DNA of 14,159 nt from Neoechinorhynchus agilis (taxonomy: Eukaryota > Animalia > Acanthocephala). Below the pieces are notes generated by a model. It saw only the letters and a list, made by a program, of their open reading frames with translations, had not been told where the DNA came from and did no database searches. The stretch lies in the NCBI GenBank assembly GCA_051530055.1, contig JBMGUZ010000071.1, forward strand, positions 1 through 14,159. Direction: 5' to 3'. Numbering within the stretch: position 1 is the stretch's first letter; each line of letters begins with the position of its first letter. Shown one piece after another: positions 1,523 to 14,159 of this stretch. The position numbers and the translations under genes were made by a program.

Positions 1523-1935
1523 ATGAGTATCTCTCTCGAAACCGTAGCCACGCCAGCTATATTCTCCGCGGTTAATGCGGTAAATTTTGGCTTTCCTTTA
1601 CAGTATTCTATCACATTTATTTTCATTAAAACAGATCCATGAAGAGGTTTGCCATGCTTTGGGATTGGGTTGTTGCATTATCACACCAATCAGCTACAAA
1701 TCACTCGGCCTAGAATCTGATCCGACCATTTATTTAGTGAAGGTATGAGGTTGTTTCACCTTTTAGCACTTTAATTTTATTCTTATAGGCTATTGTGACC
1801 AAACCTGGATGTCCACCGGAGGACACTGTTTGCCTGTTTAGGATTGCAGTCAATCTCAATAATGCGGAGAACTTATACACTCTTGTGTCCGTCAAGTGCA
1901 ATGTCCTTCTTGACGATGAGATCATTGCATTCTAA
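1523..1935 (+). CDS. Cys-rich stefin (type 1 cystatin)-like protein A, 103 aa; join(1523..1579,1635..1742,1789..1935)
   Basis: Two phase-0 GT-AG introns (55 and 46 nt). MSISLETVATPAIFSAVNA|IHEEVCHALGLGCCIITPISYKSLGLESDPTIYLVK|AIVTKPGCPPEDTVCLFRIAVNLNNAENLYTLVSVKCNVLLDDEIIAF*. Length, intron positions (after codon ~20 and after Y-x-V-K) and the DDEIxxF tail match stefin A/B architecture (human CSTB introns follow codons 22 and 56; its tail is HDELTYF). Two paralogs in the window confirm the exon model. An in-frame TAA lies upstream of the ATG. Confidence 0.85.
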
Positions 1936-3302: not shown

Positions 3303-4054
3303 TTCTTTGACTCTAGTATGGGAGCAAAGATGGACAATCTTCAACCGTAATTTTTGGTGTTTTGCGAACGGCTTAATGAATTACCCTCAAACGAGGCTCT
3401 GTTCCTGATCAAGGACACCTTCTTTATTCCAAAATCGCTTTATAAGCTGCGTACAGCACGGCTGGAAAAATAAGACGGACCTCTCCCGAAAAAATTTAAA
3501 AATACTCAGCGGTCGGACGAGGCGCGGCGTCAAGCGTCCTTGATGTGTGGTCCGACGGTTCGGATATCCGAAAAGCTGCCGATATTTCTCTGCCAACTTA
3601 TTTGGGATCGTGTGAAGCAGGTGGTAAAATAGTGCAGTCTTTTCTTGGCGATGATTACACTTTGGATGAAGATTTCGTGGAGGCTGCTAGTTTTTTATGT
3701 GAACATTGTGGTAGCGAGTAAGTAACCATCAATGGTTGTAACCCTCGTAGCGAAATTCATAACTCTTTAATTTCAGATTCTCGTGACCTGGTGAACCGAA
3801 CTCGATTGGCGGCGGTCTCTACAAGAGAATCAGATGCTTGGCTCAACACAATCCTAATCGCTTCGGTAGGTACCCTTCTCTCTAACGAGACAGTAAGGAT
3901 TGGAGTGTCCTTGAGACTTGGGTACCGATGTGCACATCTTATGGCTGATGATACGGAGCAACGGTGGAACCATCGGGACGTCATGGTCTCGTCTGCCGGC
4001 AGTCAAAAGGAAGGTACTTACGACACGCCGAAGTGAACGCATTTCTTAGTCGTG
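3303..4054 (+). mobile_element. Decayed CRE-clade non-LTR retrotransposon fragment (copy 1): post-RT region and zinc-knuckle region, endonuclease missing
   Basis: With stops and frameshifts it reads CERLNELPSNEALFLIKDTFFIPKSLYKLRTA, DIRKAADISLPTYLGS, RTRLAAVSTRESDAWLNTILIASVGTLLSNETVRIGVSLRLG and GATVEPSGRHGLVC, all typical of CRE/RLE elements. It aligns in inverted orientation to ~11240-11930, and homology stops at about 4054. Confidence 0.85.
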
Positions 4055-4156
4055 AAGCTCCTTTGGTTCAACTGCAGCGTATAAAAAATTAAACGACTAT
4101 TTAATGTGAATACTAATAATTTACAACTATTGCGAGTTACTTTTTTAGTCAGTACC

Positions 4157-5784
4157 CTAATGCCACCGCGTTTTATGCCAATTGAAGTCAAATGGCCGTT
4201 TTTTTGCTTTAGGCTCTGCGATCTCTATTGATTGTTTCTCCTCCTCATTTTTCTCGTCTTTTGTCCGGTTCGTAATGTGCAGCATCGTAACGTAATCCAC
4301 TTGAGCGGGGGTTAAGTTGTCTTTTGGTCCTCCGTACGGAACTCGATGTTTCGCCATCAGTGGAACCAATTCGATCCACACAAAGCGCCTAACTTGATTC
4401 AGCTCCAAAGCGTCTATTGGTGACCTCTCTTTGAATTTCTCTACTATTTCATATGATCGAGCAACAAGATCTTTATCAAGGTCTAAAAGGAGGAAAATTG
4501 AATATTGCTAATTTGGATAATAACATTTCGAATTAAATATCTTTACAATATCTTACCTTTAATTTTTCCTTCGTTCGCCATCCCGAGGAATCTTTCAATT
4601 GTAGGAATAATGGATTCTATATAATGATATTGCCTCCATTCACGTAGATCATCCGGCACCACCTCTTCATTCTTTCCTTTTTTTGGCCGTTTAGCTGGCG
4701 GCGGCTCATTATCAGTGGTTTCGTCGGCGGCCAAATCAACCTTTGGTCTCCGGCCTCGTTCTTTGAGTCTTCTCTTCAGTTCTCGCGTTAAATTGCAAAT
4801 GAATAACTCAGACAGTCCATGATAGTCTGACATGCTTGGTGAAACTCTGAACATCTCCGCTTCAATGGACTCAGGCGAATTCTGTAAGCGCAAAAAATGC
4901 GTAATCATTAACTTTCTCCTGCAATGATTAGAATTTATGATAAAAACAACTCTCAACCTTACCTACATGGCTTTTAGGGTTCGTTGACGAGCTTCAATAT
5001 ATTCCGGATCTAATGGCTGCTGATCAAGCACTGATTGCTGCTGACTTTGCGGCATCCTTTGATCTCTATTAATCATTTGGTACGGGGCGACATTTACATG
5101 TTGCATTGGATTGATTTGTTCGTTTCTGGGTTGTTTAGCAGTTTGTTGTATTTCAATTATAGAACGACGTTCACCCAACAACGCTCTATTGACCATTGTT
5201 CTTTTAGCTGCCTGATGTTGTTCAAGGACTGATTGCTCCTGACTTTGCGCTATTTTTTGGTTCTCGTGTCCAATGACCATTTTCTGTTGACCTCTATATA
5301 TGTTTTGCATCGCAGCAGCTTGCTGTTGATCGTAAACTGCCATTTCCATTGGATATATTCGCTGATACATCGGATTGTTGATCATTTTTTTCTGGTCATG
5401 TACTAAATTCTGCATTGTAGGTAATTGTTGTTGGACAATAACCGACTGCTGCATCAATGGCATTCGTTGGTTCATCGGATTGTTCGTCATTTGTTGCTGA
5501 TCAACCAATGGTCGCGATCCAAACGGCAGTGGGCCTTGCTGAGAACAATGCCCTATTGGAAGTACCTGCTCAGATATTTGACCCTGCTGTCCATTATTAA
5601 TTGCTGGACATTGCGGAATTCGGTGTTGAAATTTGTTGGCCGCTGGTACGCTCTGATTATTGCACGAGTATTGCCGTTGATTATAAGTTGCAATAAATGG
5701 CAGTATGTCACTTGGTTGAACGTTTTTAGCTGCAGACCCGCGTAGAATATTTTGCATTTGTTCATGCTCCCATGTCTGTTGCAT
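4157..5784 (-). CDS. Uncharacterised 501-aa protein with Gln/Met/Asn-rich repetitive N-terminal half and NLS-like motifs; complement(join(4157..4482,4557..4918,4967..5784))
   Basis: Three track ORFs (4963-5784, 4543-4956, 4157-4408) join in frame through GT-AG introns 4919-4966 (48 nt, GTAGGT..TGCAG) and 4483-4556 (74 nt, GTAAGA..TTTAG). Total is 1506 nt with no internal stop. Basic motifs PPPAKRPKK and PKAKKRP are present. An additional upstream exon cannot be excluded. Confidence 0.8.
5016..5505 (-). repeat. Imperfect internal coding duplications in the Q-rich gene
   Basis: QSQEQSVLEQ (~5215-5250) versus QSQQQSVLDQ (~5016-5052), and DQQQMTNNPMNQRM (~5460-5505) versus DQKKMINNPMYQRI (~5356-5400). 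The similarity is also visible at DNA level. Confidence 0.7.
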
Positions 5785-6661: not shown

Positions 6662-7071
6662 ATGAGCAACATTAGTGGGGAATTAGTTATATCCTCGACC
6701 GTCTATGACGCTATTACTCAGGTAAACTGAAAAATTAATTTCATTGCGCTCTTTAATGCTCTTAATAGCTCAAGAACCAGATCTGCAACGAGCTCAGTAT
6801 GTGCAACTGCGCACTTGCACCACTTTCTTATAAGCAGGAAACTGTCTCAGATGTCCCGGTCATGTATTGGGTTAAAGTATGTATTTTCTTTGCTTTAAAG
6901 ATTGATCAACTCTTCTTTACTTAGACTTCAGTTTATTATCCAGATTCGTGCAATGCAAAGTGCATCTGCATCTTTAAAGTAGCAGTGGATCTAACTAACG
7001 GAATAAATCCCTATACTCTAGTGGCCATCAAGTGCAATGTCAGACTTGATGATGAAATCGAAACTTTCTAA
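6662..7071 (+). CDS. Cys-rich stefin-like protein B, 104 aa; join(6662..6721,6769..6876,6925..7071)
   Basis: Phase-0 GT-AG introns of 47 and 48 nt; exon 2 is exactly 108 nt as in A and C. MSNISGELVISSTVYDAITQ|LKNQICNELSMCNCALAPLSYKQETVSDVPVMYWVK|TSVYYPDSCNAKCICIFKVAVDLTNGINPYTLVAIKCNVRLDDEIETF*. The last 36 aa align without gaps to the end of human stefin B ([36 protein letters not shown], recalled). Confidence 0.88.
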
Positions 7072-7134: not shown

Positions 7135-8083
7135 AGTGAATGTAAGTGTTTATTAAAATCCGTACACGGGTTACGAACTCCAAGATGAATTGTACGCATA
7201 TTGCATTCAAGTTCTTATTGAGTACTTAATGTTTTGCTTGAAATATAATACGGAATGGTCTTTGGAATTTTTAATAACAACGTAGATAAGTCCCAACATT
7301 GAACTATGGACGCCGTTGAAATTATTTGTCACAATTGCTATTTCAGGACTGATTTAACTTCTACCATTATTCATGTTTTATTTTCAACGTTTAATTTATC
7401 GTAAACCCATTGTCAAGAATAAAAACAGATAAATGTATTAGCTTCGTGCTTAAGCATTTAATTATGAGCTTATTAAAAAAAATTATAAGTGTGCGAGGTT
7501 ATCTCTGTTTTCAAAGCTCTAATTTCCAATCAGATCTCACATGGCACAACTCAATCTCAAAAATATTAAAGGACTCGTCAATTAATTCGACCAATAACGT
7601 AATGACATCTTCTGTGAAAATTCTTTAGCATTATCTTGCAAGAATTCGATTTTAATAATGCCAAAAGTTGACACATCAAAAATGTGTAGTATAAATTTAA
7701 ATTGTGCAAAGTATCTGGCGAACGAAACTACACGTTTCTTTAAAATTTCTACCTTACCTTTATTTCAAATCACTTTCATTCATTTATCTTTCAGCATAAG
7801 CGTTCATCTATTATTTGATTCGTTGTTTAAAGTAAATTCATAGCAGGATCAAAATCTATCTTGCCGTGCAAATCACGAAACCAACAGAACAGCAAAGAGT
7901 CATTTAGGCCCAATATTTTGGAAATTATCGCAAATTTTTTAGCTTGTATATTCGCTAATTAAAAATTAAAACCTATGCGTATTGATATATGCAGAAGTTA
8001 GTGGAAAATTTTCTGTGTTTTTAATTTAAGTATAAATAAAAAATTCTATCGATAGAAAGTCCTTCGGGACAATAAAATTGCAG

Positions 8084-8197
8084 TTTCGGTGAGAATAATC
8101 CCGGTCATTACATATTTTATTTATTCGAAATATTTCGCGAGATATCCTCGCCTCTTCAGTCATCTAAAAATAGGTATTCCATATTACGATTTTTGCT
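8084..8197 (-). repeat. 3' pseudo-LTR of the Penelope-like element
   Basis: Reverse complement of 10248-10361, with 111/114 positions identical by hand count. It starts about 40 nt after the endonuclease stop codon. Confidence 0.93.
8126..8162 (-). ncRNA. Minimal type I hammerhead ribozyme motif (sense to the PLE ORF)
   Basis: UGA-CUGAAGA-G-GCGAGG(AUA)UCUCGC-GAA-AUAU-U-UCG. It has the CUGANGA and GAAA core, a 6-bp stem II, a palindromic AUAU in place of stem III, and a short stem I (UGA/UCG). This architecture is known from PLE pLTRs. Confidence 0.7.
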
Positions 8198-8237
8198 CGA
8201 GTACGCGGGATCGCCAAACCCGAAGTTCAAGGACCAA

Positions 8238-8990
8238 TTATCCGCTCGAACCCCCTGAGCTGTGTTTCGTTTTTTGTTTTTCCATTGATTTTTTTATATT
8301 GATTTTTATCACGTCGCTGGCTGGAAGTTTCGAGCTAAAATTAGCTTTATTTCCCTCCATTGTGTTTGACGCAGCGATGTGTAAAGCCTCTAAAACCAGG
8401 CGTCTTTTTAAGATTTGTTCCTCTTCCATGAAGTAGGTGCCATTAAAATCAGCGCGATGCTTAAAAGTCTCTTGATGATTTGAGATTGCCGATGAATGCT
8501 CAAATCGAATGTAAGCTTGCTTATGTTGCGAGACCCTCTTCTTAATGCCCTTCATCGTTTGTCCGATGTAGACTTTATCACACTGTTCACAGTGCATTCT
8601 GTAAAACCCATGCATCGGCTCAGTTTTACTCTTCCTCTTGAATGTGCATCTGAGGGCGATTCCTTTATTGTTATAGAGACGAGTTCCAGCCTTCTTACTC
8701 ATAATGGAGTAGATCATTTGATTTGTTTCATCATTAATGAAGTTCACTTTTTCGAAACATATAAGCTCTGTGGGCGATTTTTGGTTGTGGTTGTTGTGTG
8801 GATGGTACTTCCTGCTTTTGATTCCGCGGTCTATAATCCATTTGGGATATCCCATCATTTTTAGCTTCTGGACTATCTTCTCCCTTTCTTTACTCCACGC
8901 CAATCGAGTGGATGAGATAAGAGAGGCTCTTCGGAAGTATGAAGAGACCGCCGAGATTTTATGCCTTATCGGTTGGTGACTTGACCAATG
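8238..8990 (-). pseudogene. PLE ORF, C-terminal part: RT thumb/linker and GIY-YIG endonuclease, out of frame with the RT core
   Basis: The frame reads HWSSHQPIRHKISAVSSYFRRA..KLKMMGYPKWII..HGFYRMHCEQCDKVYIGQT..KRVSQH..SAISNHQETFKH..RRLVLEALHI. This includes the GIY(GFY)-CxxC-YIG arrangement and His residues typical of PLE endonucleases. Confidence 0.9.
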
Positions 8991-8992
8991 TG

Positions 8993-10247
8993 ACGAAAAA
9001 GTGAGGTGCTAACTTTGCCTTGTGATGAGCGCTTAACAAGGACGTCCAGGAACGAGACCTCACCGTACATGCCCTCTTCATTGACTGTCCACTGCATGTG
9101 TGAATCTTGAATATTCAGATCAGCATCTAGTGAATCTTCGTTGTGGTTTGAATCAGTTAGAATGAATGCATCGTCTACATAACGCCAACATCGATTTACA
9201 TAACTATGAAAATCCAAGAAAGTGGACTCCCAATCCCGCATGTAAATGTCGCACAAAGTCGGAGCTAGTGGAGATCCCATGGCTACACCATCTTTTTGAT
9301 CGTAAAAAGAACCCTCGAATTCGAAGGCTGTCATACTCGTGCACCATTGAATTAGGGAATACCACGTACCACGGTCCAAACGTGGTTCACTGCAATTCTT
9401 CGATAGTAAATCAGCTGATAGTTCGATCGTTTTGGTCAACAGGACATTGGTGAAAAGAGCATTAACATCGGCCGTAAACATTCTGTGGAGCTTAACGTTT
9501 ATTTTCCTGATCTCAATCGCAAACGTAGGTCCATCCTTGATGTGCGAGGCGGAAGTTGCTACAATCGATCTTAATAAAACATTAATCCTTTTGGATAGGC
9601 GATGGTTGAACGACATGTAACTGGCTATAATTGGACGGTACTGCATGATTGGCTTGTGAATCTTCGGAAGGAGATATAGAAACGCACACTTAGCCGATGA
9701 TGATCGCGTCGCGTTGTAAAATTGAAGACTGATCAGAGACCTGTTCAACAAGTTCCTTAGGAAACCGTTAAATTTAATTTCTCTGCTTCGCATGGGATAT
9801 TTCGCCAGCCTCACGAATTTGTCAGAGTAAAGAGGATCGATAGCCCCCTTTTGATAACCTTCCATGTCCACAGCTACTAAAGCGCGTCCTTTGTCAGATT
9901 TGCAAATCATTATTGATGCCACATGCTTCACAGACTTCGCGATTGCCATTTCATCATTATCGTTGCGAACGTTCCGACTACGACCTTTCCTGTCATAGGC
10001 CACAATTGAACTCATCAGATCTGGATGTGAGTTTATGAGCAGCTCTGTATCACATCGGATTTTAGTCGATCGAATCTTATTCTTAATAATATAGTCGGGT
10101 CCCTTGTTCAGCAAATTCAGTTGCCTTGAGGAGATAGTGCGTTTTGATTTATTTACGAAGTAGCCGCGCTCTTCCCATGTTTTCGGTCTTAATTGTTCCA
10201 GCTTCCATAAGTGGCTCGTGGCTGTATGATCTTCCTCGATTGATACT
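8993..10247 (-). pseudogene. PLE ORF, reverse transcriptase core (part of track ORF 8966-10393)
   Basis: Motifs LLNKGPDY, KSDKGRALV, YLLPKIHK..RPII, ADVNALFTNV, QKDGVAMGSPLAP, RYVDD and SFLDVLV are present with no internal stop. A frameshift occurs at 8991-8992. Confidence 0.93.
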
Positions 10248-10361
10248 AGCAAAAATCGTAATATGGAAAACCTATTTTTAGATGACTGAAGAGGCGAGGA
10301 TACCTCGCGAAATATTTCGAATAAATAAAATATATAATGACCGGGATTATTCTCACCGAAA
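10248..10361 (+). repeat. Inverted 5' pseudo-LTR copy of the Penelope-like element
   Basis: Inverted copy of 8084-8197 (3 mismatches in 114 nt). Confidence 0.93.
10283..10319 (+). ncRNA. Minimal type I hammerhead ribozyme motif (antisense to the PLE ORF)
   Basis: CUGAAGA 10286-10292, extra G, stem II GCGAGG/CCUCGC (10294-10299/10303-10308, fully Watson-Crick), GAA 10309-10311, AUAU 10312-10315, predicted cleavage after U10316. Confidence 0.7.
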
Positions 10362-10795
10362 GTGTAATAAAAAATTCTTTTATTGATACTCAATACATCT
10401 TTAAAGTAAACTTAAAATTTTCAATACAGATGTATATTTTTCAACATTTGGGAAATCAATAGGCAATTTAGAAAGCTACAAATTTGAAGAATATATTAAT
10501 ACATAAATTTAAGATCAATGGCATTGTGCTTTAAGGTAATAATTTTCATATTCTTGTGTCTAATCGGATTCTTATTTATGGTCACTCATATAAATCTTGG
10601 TTACAAAAGATTTCTATAGAACTTTAATCCATCAAGATAAATCGATGATTTTAAACCCAACAGACGAGCAGAATTTTATCGTTTCGATTATCAATCTACG
10701 AATCGCAATAATTTTAATAGATAAGCTGATTTATTGTAATTCTTATTATTTAAGACAAAAGTTTTTGTACTTATATAACACGTTGATCATTCACA

Positions 10796-12720
10796 TCACC
10801 GCTCTGGACCACTCAGCTGCCGTCCTGGTGTAACGGTCGAAAGGACTGATGCAGCGTTCCACCGTAGCACAGCCAGACTTATATTTTGTTTGAAAAATGC
10901 TCCTGATCTCGGATCGCCAGTGATTCGTCTCAATCTCTTAGACAATTGCTTCACCAGGTCTTGCGCCGTAGTACCGAACGACCCACGTGCTTCGACGCCA
11001 AAGGGAACAAAATAATGATTTCGACCCAAGTCCCGGTATTTGGCCTTTTTGCGTTCTTCAGCGACGATTGCTGCTCCACCTGTTTAACAGCGGCGAATTT
11101 TATATTGTTGGCTGCGATTGGCGTCCCAAAGAAGGCATTTTCCTTCTCGCCACGGGAATACTGCAAGGCCGTCCGTTGTACGGCTATCGAGTTAGCCAAG
11201 ATTGCTTGGCTTTCGGATGTTGGCCGCATTCACAGTATTCAGGGCATGACTAGTAATTGCGTTCACTTCGGCGTGTAGTAACAACTTTCCTTTGGTTGCC
11301 GACAGACGAGACCATGACGTCCCGATTTTTCCACCGTTGCTCCTTAACGGTTACCATAGGATGTGCACATCGATATCCCAAGTCTCCGGGACACTGCAAT
11401 CCTTACTGTCTCGTTAGAGAGAAGGGTACCTACCGAAGCGATTAGGATTGTGTTGAGCCAAGCACCTGATTCTCTTGTAGAGACCGCCGCCAATCGAGTT
11501 CGGTTCACCAGGTCACGAGAATCTGAAATTAAAGAGTTATGAATTCTTGCTCCGACGATTGCAACCATTGACGGAAGCCTGTTTGCTGTCTGAATCTCCA
11601 CATCACAGATTAAGAGCATCCACGAAATTTTCATCCAAAGTGTTATTCTCGCCAATAAAAGACTGAACTATTTTGCGATGTGCTTTATAAGGCCCCAAAT
11701 AAGTTGGCAGAGGAATATCGACTGGTTTTCGGATACCCAAACCGCTGTAAGACCGAGGTTTAAAATATTCTCGAGAGAGGCGCGCAGCTTATACAACAGT
11801 TTTGGAATGAAGAGGGTGTTTTTGATAAGGAACAGAGCTTCATGTCAAGATAATTCATTAACTCGTTCGCACAGCACCGAAAGTTGCGGTTGAAGATTGG
11901 CAATCTCTGTTTCAACATTAGAATCAAAAATGCAGTTTCCTAGAGAACTCAAGCGGTCTTGAGTTATAAATTCTATCGCGGGTGCCAGGTTCTAATATCT
12001 CTCAAGAAAGTTTGCCTGGCCGCCTCATCTTCCACGTTCATCACTAAAGTCTCGCATTTCGCAACATTCAATTCAATGCCAATTTTCGCCGACTCCTTCA
12101 CGAATGTACAGGGGAGTTGAAGTCCCGTGGGCATTAGCGAAATAGCGAAATGCTTCTGGTGCGTGATCTCCAACTAGTTCGAGCAGTTCTGCTCGGTGAA
12201 CAGTGTTGAATGCATTTTTGAAATCACATTTCGAGATCACGCGCGGCTTTTAGTTTCCGGTGATGAAAGTTCGGAGTGAATGAAATGCATTTTTGAAATC
12301 AAATTTCAAGATCACGCACAGCTGTTAGTTTCCGGTGATGAAAGTAGCAGCCAAACTGAGTAGGACGAAGCAGCATCAAAATTTTTGCTGTTAAGCGTCG
12401 CAGAGTTGTTCCGATTACAATGTGGCGAATCCCACCTTCCTTTTTCGCGAGGGCACACAAAGATACGCCGAAAAAAAACTTAATCGCTTTCGAAATCAAC
12501 TCTCCCGCTGCCAATTGGTCGATTAAGCGTGCCAATGGATCTTCAAGGGACTGAGCAGCGTCACCTACTTAAAAAGAAGTCATATCCTTTAGGTGTTGGG
12601 GCCAGAGCCCGTGATCTGATCCGTTAGCATCTGAGGATATATCGTCTTCACTTCTGATTTCGATGATAAAACATAAGGAATCGTATCGAAGGGGGAATAT
12701 TTCACGAAATACTACCGACC
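10796..12720 (-). mobile_element. Decayed CRE-clade non-LTR retrotransposon (copy 2): partial RT plus restriction-like endonuclease
   Basis: RT motifs GLWPQHLKD, FFGVSLCALAKKEGGIRHIVIGTTLRRLTAK, DFKNAFN and IGIELNVAKCE. Then EALFLIKNTLFIPKLLYKLR, GRHGLVC, and endonuclease DGLAVFPWREGKCLLWDA..AEERKKAKY..FVPFGVEARGSFG..ISLAVLRWNAASVL. Many stops and frameshifts. The 5' boundary is approximate. Confidence 0.9.
12209..12345. repeat. Tandem duplication (62-bp units, 75-bp period) of the RT motif A region in CRE copy 2
   Basis: 12209-12270 versus 12284-12345, 57/62 identical. Each unit encodes KxDFKNAF on the - strand. Confidence 0.9.
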
Positions 12721-13383: not shown

Positions 13384-13791
13384 ATGAGCTACACCAGCGA
13401 AGCTTTGCCAATCAAACAAGTTTTCACCGCAGTAGAGACGGTAAATATACTAATGAAACTTTCAATCGAATTCGAGTTTTTGTATTTAGCTCAAGGATGA
13501 TATCTGTAGCATCCTTTGTCTCCCAGAGTGCGCTCTTACGCCACTTAGCTTTAGACAGCTCATGATTAATGGAACTCCAATCAATTACTTGGTCAAGGTA
13601 AATTACTTATTAAAGCAGCTTTTATTCTAACATCTCCTTTTAAATAGACGAGCGTGACCCAAAAGGATTGTTGTGATCATTCAACGATTTGCATTTTAAA
13701 GATTAGAATAGTCAGTGTTACACCCGCAGAGTATTCGTTCATATCAGTCAAATGCAACGTTCCTTTAGAAGAGGATATTATTCCATTCTAA
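13384..13791 (+). CDS. Cys-rich stefin-like protein C, 102 aa; join(13384..13440,13490..13597,13648..13791)
   Basis: Phase-0 GT-AG introns of 49 and 50 nt; exon 2 is 108 nt. MSYTSEALPIKQVFTAVET|LKDDICSILCLPECALTPLSFRQLMINGTPINYLVK|TSVTQKDCCDHSTICILKIRIVSVTPAEYSFISVKCNVPLEEDIIPF*. An in-frame TAA lies upstream of the ATG. Confidence 0.85.
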
Positions 13792-13862: not shown

Positions 13863-14159
13863 TTGTTTCCGTAATTGTGAGCCGTGAGATGAAGGCAGGG
13901 AAAAGGAAATACTTGATTTGCTTAGTCGATATAAAATAAATGGACAGGCACACAAAATAAAGAATTTGTGCTTTTTAAAAAATGTTTTTTTTTATTAGAT
14001 AGCTACTTTACGCTACAAAATCAGCAACATGTATTTTCCATTGCAAAAACTGCTTTATAGGTTTCGTTGGTCAAAACCTAATTACAAATATCATAAGCTT
14101 AGAATTATAGCGCAGCATAGCTAAAAACGCATTGAATAAATGCGAAATTATTAAGGTGT

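Follow-up and report, generated by a model that had tools for sequence, protein, structure and literature searches.

A tandem family of cysteine-rich, stefin-related genes in the acanthocephalan Neoechinorhynchus agilis

The window analysed in this study is a stretch of 14,159 nucleotides, positions 1 to 14,159 of contig JBMGUZ010000071.1 in the assembly GCA_051530055.1 of the acanthocephalan Neoechinorhynchus agilis. It carries three genes on the plus strand, here called A, B and C, which code for small cysteine-rich proteins of 103, 104 and 102 amino acids, respectively. According to sequence reading and a check of splice sites, each gene is composed of three exons separated by two GT-AG introns, both in phase 0. 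From position 1148 to position 14159 the window is homologous to chromosome CM121342.1 (at about 0.996-1.016 Mb, 97.7-99.4% identity). Two further paralogs are present on the chromosome: D, located directly upstream of A, and E (NCBI model P0004), about 40 kb away in the opposite orientation. The order on CM121342.1 is thus D-A-B-C, followed by three genes for C1q-domain proteins.

Exon 1 of gene A (1523-1579) starts with the ATG, ends at a GT donor and codes for Met1-Ala19, the N-terminus and the first half of a helix. Exon 2 (1635-1742, Ile20-Lys55) covers the C-terminus of the helix, a cysteine-bearing loop, strand beta2, a degenerate first hairpin loop (L1, with LGLES plus DP) and the start of beta3; its cysteine codons are those of Cys25 (1650-1652), Cys32 (1671-1673) and Cys33 (1674-1676). 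Exon 3 (1789-1935, Ala56-Phe103 and the stop codon) supplies the end of beta3, a lengthened beta3-beta4 loop, beta4, the second hairpin loop (L2), beta5 and a C-terminal strand of stefin type, DDEIIAF, and contains the codons of Cys63 (1810-1812), Cys70 (1831-1833) and Cys92 (1897-1899). The span 1635-1935, singled out by an earlier reading of this DNA from its letters alone (the sequence-only reading), corresponds to exons 2 and 3 of gene A with the intron between them.

Gene B has exon 1 at 6662-6721 (Met1-Gln20), exon 2 at 6769-6876 (Leu21-Lys56), with codons of Cys26 (6784-6786), Cys32 (6802-6804) and Cys34 (6808-6810), and exon 3 at 6925-7071 (Thr57-Phe104 and stop), with codons of Cys65 (6949-6951), Cys69 (6961-6963), Cys71 (6967-6969) and Cys93 (7033-7035). 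Gene C follows with exon 1 at 13384-13440 (Met1-Thr19), exon 2 at 13490-13597 (Leu20-Lys55), carrying Cys25 (13505-13507), Cys29 (13517-13519) and Cys33 (13529-13531), and exon 3 at 13648-13791 (Thr56-Phe102 and stop), carrying Cys63 (13669-13671), Cys64 (13672-13674), Cys70 (13690-13692) and Cys91 (13753-13755). Protein A is identical to NCBI model P0001, "hypothetical protein ACOME3_004828". The other two database models are shorter than the three-exon models given here: P0002 (6769-7071) starts at the internal Met31 and cuts gene B from 104 to 74 amino acids, and P0003 (13384-13720) runs into intron 2 of gene C, giving a product of 76 amino acids labelled "partial" instead of 102. The chromosomal copy of gene C is annotated at 102 amino acids, and its translation is identical to that of the contig copy.

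After the initiator methionine, cysteine is the best-conserved residue type among the five paralogs. There are six cysteines in A (positions 25, 32, 33, 63, 70 and 92), seven in B (26, 32, 34, 65, 69, 71 and 93), seven in C (25, 29, 33, 63, 64, 70 and 91) and eight each in D and E, which amounts to 5.8-7.8% of residues. In the numbering of A, used from here on, Cys 25, 33, 70 and 92 are invariant in all five proteins. All five also have cysteine at 63 and/or 64, and an extra one near Cys25 whose place varies: A has it at 32, B and E at 31, C at 29 and D at 22. Six conserved slots can thus be defined, namely 25; 29/31/32 (22 in D); 33; 63/64; 70; and 92. Further cysteines are found at 68 in B and E and at 9 plus 40 in D. 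The counts for A, B and C and the four invariant cysteines (exon 2 positions 6 and 14, exon 3 position 15 and the Cys of KCN) had already been proposed by the sequence-only reading; the gene models confirm both, with the invariant four extending to D and E. The shifting third cysteine that it placed at exon 2 position 13, 12 or 10, and the loop cysteines of GCPP, SCNAKC and DCCD, are matched exactly.

Invariant alignment columns hold 56% of cysteine occurrences, as against 17% of all columns (Fisher one-sided p = 0.008-0.03 per sequence). In A, B, C and E every cysteine falls within 23 of 103 positions in three segments, one reaching from the last turn of the helix to where beta2 starts, one from the beta3-beta4 loop to where beta4 starts, and one at the end of beta5 (P from 1e-4 to 6e-6 per sequence, for segments chosen post hoc and n = 5 family members that, as paralogs, are not independent). 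The cysteines form recurrent motifs, CC in A, C and E, CxC in B and E (two per protein), CxxxC in B, C and E, and CxxC in D, and the loops that bear them are rich in Pro, Gly, Asp, Asn, Lys and His.

Pairwise identity among the paralogs is 35-52%. In all ten pairs the proportion of non-synonymous differences (pN, 0.29-0.46) lies below that of synonymous ones (pS, 0.65-0.87, saturated). The contig and chromosome haplotypes differ in genes A, B and C by two synonymous and no non-synonymous substitutions: TGC/TGT at 1899, in the codon of the invariant Cys92 and the only difference in the span of gene A, and TTA/TTG (Leu) at 13767 in gene C. Pseudogenes or annotation artefacts are excluded by the intact reading frames, the canonical splice sites, pN far below pS and the synonymous-only haplotype changes. 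The paralogs are old duplicates under purifying selection. A word-indexed search of 5.8e9 proteins and an exhaustive HMMER search of 1.84e9 representatives returned the N. agilis paralogs only, and the N. agilis transcriptome paper (PMC12690905) makes no mention of cystatin, stefin or these loci.

The affiliation of the family was revealed by structure prediction, profile comparison and gene structure. AlphaFold2 (AF2) models, which rest on 3-4 sequences each, were obtained for A and B. The model of B has a predicted local distance difference test score (pLDDT) of 88 and a predicted template-modelling score of 0.82, and consists of a short beta1, a helix at 12-28 and strands at 35-45, 51-60, 68-77 and 86-93; residues 61-70 form the zone of lowest confidence (pLDDT about 75). 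Foldseek matched it to human stefin B (1STF, template-modelling score (TM) 0.76/0.80), Clonorchis CsStefin-1 (TM 0.78/0.81), Dictyostelium cystatin A2 (0.74/0.77) and stefin A (0.71/0.75), the leading structures for the models of A and B together being 1STF, 4N6V, 8GQQ, 5ZC1 and 1DVC (TM 0.70-0.82). About 40 of the top matches belong to the cystatin superfamily, and type-2 cystatins score lower (TM 0.52-0.64). The model of A is weaker than that of B (pLDDT 74); its top match is also stefin B (TM 0.70/0.78), preferred over NTF2-like proteins such as G3BP1, which show only a partial alpha+beta likeness at TM about 0.4. The stefin/cystatin fold assumed by the sequence-only reading is thus upheld.

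A profile of the five sequences compared with the PDB had a stefin, 8GQQ, as its best match (E = 0.037), with the C-terminal ...DDEI..F included in the aligned part; the second match, at E = 1.6, is due to chance. Aligned by hhalign with stefins A and B of humans, the family yields a single collinear alignment of 83 columns (E = 0.02). Identity to stefins is 16-21%. A phmmer search of the PDB with single sequences gave no cystatin match, and VERL, DUF2703 and designed ubiquitins, which appeared in single-sequence Pfam and PDB searches, were discarded as chance matches.

Introns provide a further line of evidence. Two introns are conserved in position in stefins throughout Metazoa (PMC7913475). 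In all five paralogs phase-0 introns follow residues 19 and 55 (20 and 56 in B), and in the hhalign register these align exactly to Q22|V23 and K56|V57 of human stefin B (CSTB), whose exon limits are c.66/67 and c.168/169 (PMC10814315, Table 1). Because fold models, PDB profile match and intron positions agree, we place the family in the stefin lineage: A-E very probably represent a lineage-restricted tandem family with five or more genes (D-A-B-C and E), descended from a classical stefin (type-1 cystatin) gene.

Like classical stefins (I25A; CSTA, CSTB; 1STF, 1DVC), which are single-domain proteins of about 100 residues without signal peptide, the family members are short (102-104 amino acids) and share the fold (TM 0.71-0.80), which is built from one N-terminal strand, one long helix and four long antiparallel strands with an additional strand at the C-terminus; this last strand ends in D-E-(I/L)-x-x-F. 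Three exons code for each protein, and the two phase-0 introns fall on the same aligned positions as in stefins. The stefin C-terminal motif is defined as D/E-x-L-x-Y/H-F (PMC9986714); the family ends in D/E-E/D/G-I-x-(A/T/P)-F, so that acidic, aliphatic and terminal Phe residues are kept and Tyr/His is not. Of the stefin features, neither the Gly trunk at the N-terminus nor the QxVxG loop has survived in the family, which has gained six residues in the beta3-beta4 loop and the six conserved cysteine slots. Classical stefins have no disulfides and at most a single, unpaired cysteine; human stefins have 0-1 cysteines, against 6-8 in the family.

In stefins, the N-terminal Gly trunk and the QxVxG loop are the elements that bind papain-like proteases. 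The position of the N-terminal Gly4 aligns with the initiator Met of the family, and the QVVAG position is occupied by LGLES (A), ETVSD (B), LMING (C), LIVDS (D) and LTASS (E). L1 is two residues longer than in stefins and contains an invariant Pro; the L2 Leu is retained in four of the five paralogs, and the L2 Pro is absent. The inhibitory wedge from which the sequence-only reading took its bearings is therefore not intact, and because the reactive-centre motifs are lost, canonical papain-type inhibition by these proteins is unlikely, with weak or no activity predicted.

The same reading had assumed proteins without signal peptide, and this is borne out. A heuristic check based on upstream stops and N-terminal composition found no signal peptide in the family: in-frame stops are located 21-108 nt upstream of each ATG (21 nt in A), and the N-termini are acidic, lack a hydrophobic h-region and align with stefin N-termini. 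A signal-peptide exon hidden further upstream is ruled out by the closeness of these stops; in A and D, moreover, no possible acceptor AG exists between the stop and the ATG. In the upstream sequences of A, D and E, TATA-like boxes can be read 40-95 nt 5' of the ATG.

Where the cysteines lie on the fold follows from the models. The L1 hairpin links beta2 with beta3 and L2 links beta4 with beta5; because these loops join the other strand ends, the opposite pole is made up of the beginnings of beta2 and beta4, the ends of beta3 and beta5 and the C-terminus of the helix, which leads into beta2. C25 belongs to the final turn of the helix, positions 29-32 to the helix-beta2 loop, and C33 immediately precedes beta2; positions 63-68 are part of the beta3-beta4 loop, C70 is placed in the first turn of beta4, and beta5 ends with C92. 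Judged by model topology, every cysteine of A, B and C is thus at the pole remote from L1 and L2, and the clustering opposite the wedge proposed by the sequence-only reading is right at this level in the models of A and B. C70 and C92 stand at equal distance (+/-11) on either side of the L2 hairpin, and in that register C70, F72, I74, V76 and T86, V88, V90, C92 form one continuous hydrophobic face. This arrangement supports a direct cross-strand pairing of C70 with C92 in the predicted structure.

The hydrophobic surroundings of these residues could also be taken as a sign of ordinary reduced thiols, with the invariant cysteines serving as small hydrophobic core residues, the loop cysteines tolerated or acting as redox buffers, and the function residing elsewhere, for example in the altered L1. 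C70 and C92 are on the hydrophobic face of beta4/beta5 and C25 would be placed beside the buried stripe of the helix; the cytosol is reducing, and stefins with unpaired cysteines exist (PMC9986714). We nevertheless consider this explanation quite improbable. In a family with 35-52% identity the cysteines are the best-conserved residues and the core Val, Ile, Leu and Ala vary freely, which points to a constraint specific for cysteine, and the extra cysteines come as spatially plausible pairs (9/40 in D, 63/64 with 68 in E, and C25 with its partner in each of the five paralogs).

The most informative comparison is with a cystatin-like (CyL) stefin of the trematode Fasciola hepatica. FhCyLS-2 (PDB 6I1M) has a stefin fold, a signal peptide and two disulfides, C39-C66 (D1) and C69-C95 (D2), demonstrated by a structure at 1.6 A and by mass spectrometry; its cysteines are found "on the side opposite to the reactive center" (PMC9986714). 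Its sequence was taken from 6I1M with the help of the published peptides and aligned with the family by MAFFT. Family C33, before beta2, aligns to C39, both located 10 residues ahead of the QVVAG position, and C92, at the end of beta5, aligns to C95. Both proteins have a C-P motif in the beta3-beta4 loop (C66 and family C63/64), and C69 and C70 mark the start of beta4. About L2, C69/C95 of FhCyLS-2 are symmetric at +/-13 and C97/C117 of cystatin C at +/-10. Four of the six conserved slots (33, 63/64, 70 and 92) thus match the four disulfide cysteines of FhCyLS-2, 33 exactly and the others to the same loop or strand end, so that cysteines at positions equivalent to D1 and D2 are present in all five paralogs, within the ambiguity of the loop alignment.

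The two share a parasite origin and a stefin scaffold with cysteines gained at the pole opposite the reactive centre (TM 0.61/0.67 between FhCyLS-2 and the model of B). They differ in much else. CyL-stefins possess an obligatory signal peptide and a competent reactive centre (GG, QVVAG, Leu78), whereas the N. agilis family has no signal peptide and has lost its reactive centre. CyL-stefins lack the stefin C-terminal motif, FhCyLS-2 ending one residue after C95, whereas the family keeps an 11-residue extension ending in Phe. The third conserved cysteine pair (C25 and its partner) and the further extras are found in the family and not in CyL-stefins, and there is no sequence similarity between the two beyond the level of the fold. 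Their cysteines are likely to have been gained independently, by convergence. With no signal peptide, no loss of the C-terminal strand and no reactive centre, the family does not belong to CyL-stefins; having cysteines and lacking QxVxG, it stands apart from classical stefins as well.

Type-2 cystatins (I25B; cystatin C, chicken cystatin, cystatin E/M) resemble the family in having a pair of cysteines, one where beta4 begins and the other where beta5 ends (C97-C117 in cystatin C), and a longer, cysteine-bearing beta3-beta4 segment. In cystatin C, C73 is located a few residues past beta3 and is aligned by hhalign to family C63, in an alignment that is not significant. Type-2 cystatins have a signal peptide, the PW motif and QxVxG, whereas the family has neither signal peptide nor PW. 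Intron positions in type-2 cystatins probably differ from the stefin-type positions of the family. Descent from type-2 cystatins is ruled out by the non-significant hhalign comparison (E = 0.52), by TM values below those of stefins (0.52-0.64) and by the stefin-type introns. The legumain-binding loops of cystatin E/M constitute a second functional site at the same pole that bears the cysteines here, and the cystatin complexes 4N6N and 4N6O are among the fold matches of the model of B.

We propose that the six slots form three intramolecular disulfide pairs that staple the pole opposite L1 and L2. In the first pair, Cys33 would be joined with Cys63/64 of the beta3-beta4 loop, as a counterpart of D1 (C39-C66). 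In the second, Cys70 at the start of beta4 would be bonded to its cross-strand neighbour Cys92 at the end of beta5, as a counterpart of D2 (C69-C95) and of the C-terminal disulfide of type-2 cystatins. The third pair, Cys25 in the last helix turn with its movable neighbour, would be new. Such staples would rigidify the two loops of the pole, a surface that serves type-2 cystatins as a second, legumain-binding site. In that case the protein would be both stable and active under oxidising, protease-rich conditions following release independent of a signal peptide, as reported for other helminth stefins; both the export and the target are conjectural. A precedent for non-classical release in a fish parasite is EnStef of Eudiplozoon nipponicum, a stefin without signal peptide that was detected in excretory-secretory products; it differs from the family in having no disulfides, an intact GG/QVVAG/LP set and proven activity as a cathepsin and legumain inhibitor (PMC5727476). 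Alternatively, the pairs may act as reversible redox switches in the cytosol.

The distribution of cysteines agrees with pairing in three of the five proteins, as A (six), D (eight) and E (eight) are fully pairable. In D, 22 and 25 form a CxxC, and 9 and 40 arise together as an extra pair; in E, 63/64 and 68 make an extra pair. B and C have one spare cysteine each (68 in B, one of 63/64 in C), and both these positions are filled in E. The partner of C25 shifts among 29, 31, 32 and 22, yet is present in all five paralogs. Partners that co-occur and shift position are to be expected from pairwise chemistry.

The spare thiols of B and C may also be seen as the basis of intermolecular cross-linking, in which exposed loop cysteines would give rise to disulfide-bonded oligomers or tie the proteins into a cysteine-rich matrix, for instance the surface coat of the tegument or the envelopes of eggs. 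The variable cysteines are indeed placed in solvent-exposed loops with the lowest model confidence (pLDDT about 75, B 61-70), and stefin B forms cysteine-dependent dimers and oligomers. Oligomers are mentioned in PMC6357131. Against cross-linking stand the even, internally pairable cysteine counts of A, D and E, the location of the invariant cysteines in strands and the helix and not in an exposed tail, and the lack of any repeat, low-complexity or matrix-type sequence in the family. We regard it as very unlikely; a low-probability variant is that the loop cysteines are S-acylated and anchor the pole to a membrane.

Motif composition, on the other hand, brings metal binding into question. The sequence-only reading had suggested a metal-thiolate or redox site, and a cytosolic cysteine pole could in principle bind Zn(II), Cu(I) or Cd(II), turning the stefin scaffold into a carrier of a metallothionein-like or copper-chaperone-like cluster, possibly tied to metal accumulation in acanthocephalans. 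The cytosol is the default location of proteins without signal peptide; cysteine makes up 5.8-7.8% of residues, and the CC, CxC, CxxxC and CxxC motifs are typical of thiolate clusters; cysteine positions move while the number per region holds, and the counts may be odd. Metals are accumulated by acanthocephalans, about whose metal-binding proteins little is known (PMC12274423); the acanthocephalan metallothionein candidates presented so far are doubtful (PMC12274423; PMC12690905). By analogy of function, metallothioneins and Cu(I)-thiolate proteins resemble the family in being cytosolic, without signal peptide, and in having CC, CxC and CxxxC in segments rich in Pro, Gly, Lys, Asn and Asp. They show no homology to it. 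Metallothioneins are free of aromatic residues and do not fold unless metal is bound, whereas the family contains several Tyr, Phe and Trp residues and a confidently predicted alpha/beta fold. The cysteine content of metallothioneins is far higher than that of the family, and Pfam gave no metallothionein match for it.

Other observations are hard to reconcile with a metal site. The conserved cysteines match the disulfide pairs of FhCyLS-2 and type-2 cystatins; the invariant ones are spaced by x7 and x21, with no knuckle spacing; and in the models C33 (beta2) is two to three strands away from C70 and C92 (beta4/beta5), which makes a single tetrahedral site unlikely. The core of metal response elements, TGCRCNC, shows no enrichment (4 found, 7.8 expected) and does not occur in the promoters, a weak argument, as the regulator may differ. 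The match to known disulfide positions hence favours pairwise disulfide geometry over one metal site, and a metal-thiolate site is retained as an unlikely alternative, redox chemistry being conceivable as well. An extended form of the metal reading, in which the family would be a set of cytosolic Cd/Zn/Cu/Pb thiolate binders that substitute for metallothionein through tandem expansion and contribute to acanthocephalan hyperaccumulation, is distinctly unlikely.

Several points weigh against intramolecular disulfides and, in part, against the ancestry on which they are modelled. Without a signal peptide the proteins would be cytosolic by default, where stable disulfides are rare, and unconventionally exported proteins usually keep free thiols. 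The cysteine numbers of B and C are odd. Metal-thiolate binding would also be compatible with the movable cysteines and with CC, CxC and CxxxC motifs placed in Pro-, Gly-, Asp-, Asn- and Lys-rich loops. Loop placement by MAFFT is ambiguous, since it sets family PGC63 on PGC69 of FhCyLS-2, and the loop/beta4 match is good to 1-2 residues; the exact strand register of C70 and C92 rests on predicted models. In contrast to classical stefins, the single sequences have no match to the Pfam cystatin domain (PF00031), even at E <= 10, and sequence-level E-values for stefin homology are by themselves marginal, so that intron and fold evidence carry the assignment. We therefore give the disulfide staple, with both its pairing and its oxidation state, a rough probability of 0.45, held at this level because a signal peptide is missing, cytosolic disulfides are rare and the precedent, EnStef, has no cysteine pairs.

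Cysteines at this pole of the cystatin fold are already known from type-2 cystatins and CyL-stefins such as FhCyLS-2, and the "new function for the fold" announced by the sequence-only reading is overstated as far as disulfides are concerned. What is new is the combination of classical-stefin descent, a lost reactive centre, a third conserved cysteine pair with extras, a lengthened beta3-beta4 loop and a tandem array in one acanthocephalan lineage. It would represent the third, apparently independent gain of cysteines at the same pole of the stefin scaffold, after type-2 cystatins and the CyL-stefins of trematodes and myxozoans. As this gain took place without a signal peptide and with loss of the wedge, it would separate the acquisition of cysteines from that of a secretion signal in cystatin evolution. 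An elaborated, conserved pole together with a decayed wedge suggests that the working surface has moved. The proteins are candidates for new binding modules at the parasite-host interface and could serve as natural templates for disulfide-braced, stefin-based binder scaffolds; the metal reading, if true, would offer a molecular handle on metal accumulation in acanthocephalans. The case also illustrates that fold prediction and intron positions can place an "orphan" family invisible to Pfam and to searches of billions of proteins.

The surroundings of the genes deserve a short description. Positions 1-1147 of the window are not collinear with the chromosome (see the chromosomal segment L001 9186-9603); homology begins at 1148, which is 23 bp past the stop codon of chromosomal D, and paralog D is missing from the contig. 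Positions 657-997 are 98.5% identical to a chromosomal segment that starts exactly at the end of the window (L003 17176-17517). The break upstream of A suggests either a structural variant, perhaps an A-B-C unit copied in tandem, or a mis-join of the unplaced contig. On the other side, the three C1q-domain genes lie in tandem directly downstream of C (L003 17423-20273). A homologue of CutA1 (divalent-cation tolerance) is located 4.3 kb from paralog E (L002 14728-15081), and this closeness is probably a coincidence.

Between A and B, a gene of two exons occupies 4156-5783 on the minus strand (open reading frames (ORFs) 4963-5784 and 4543-4956). Its product, annotated on the chromosome with 501 amino acids, contains very high proportions of Gln, Asn, Met and Pro, and Pfam gives no match for it. 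Between B and C a retroelement is inserted at 8077-10368, with minus-strand ORFs at 8966-10393 and 8238-8903. One ORF contains a reverse-transcriptase domain (PF00078, E = 6e-9); a GIY-YIG endonuclease domain, which scores at the gathering threshold (E = 1e-4), is found in the downstream one. Inverted repeats of 121 bp (8077-8197 and 10248-10368), 96% identical, flank the element, and its architecture, as read from these features, is that of a Penelope-like element.

Degenerate, stop-riddled copies of another repeat family, 78-85% identical, are present at 3335-4054 and 10785-11936 of the window, mutually inverted, and at L001 5665-6646, which makes at least three copies in 20 kb around the stefin-like genes. 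As far as their sequence can be read, they look like the C-terminal Cys/His part of ORF2 of a non-LTR (long terminal repeat) retrotransposon. The contig and the chromosome also differ by an indel at 12278-12546, with 269 bp in the contig and 76 bp in the chromosome; a tandem repeat of a motif of about 65 bp (…gaatgcatttttgaaatca…tttccggtgatgaaagt…) is found in this region, at about 12205-12345.

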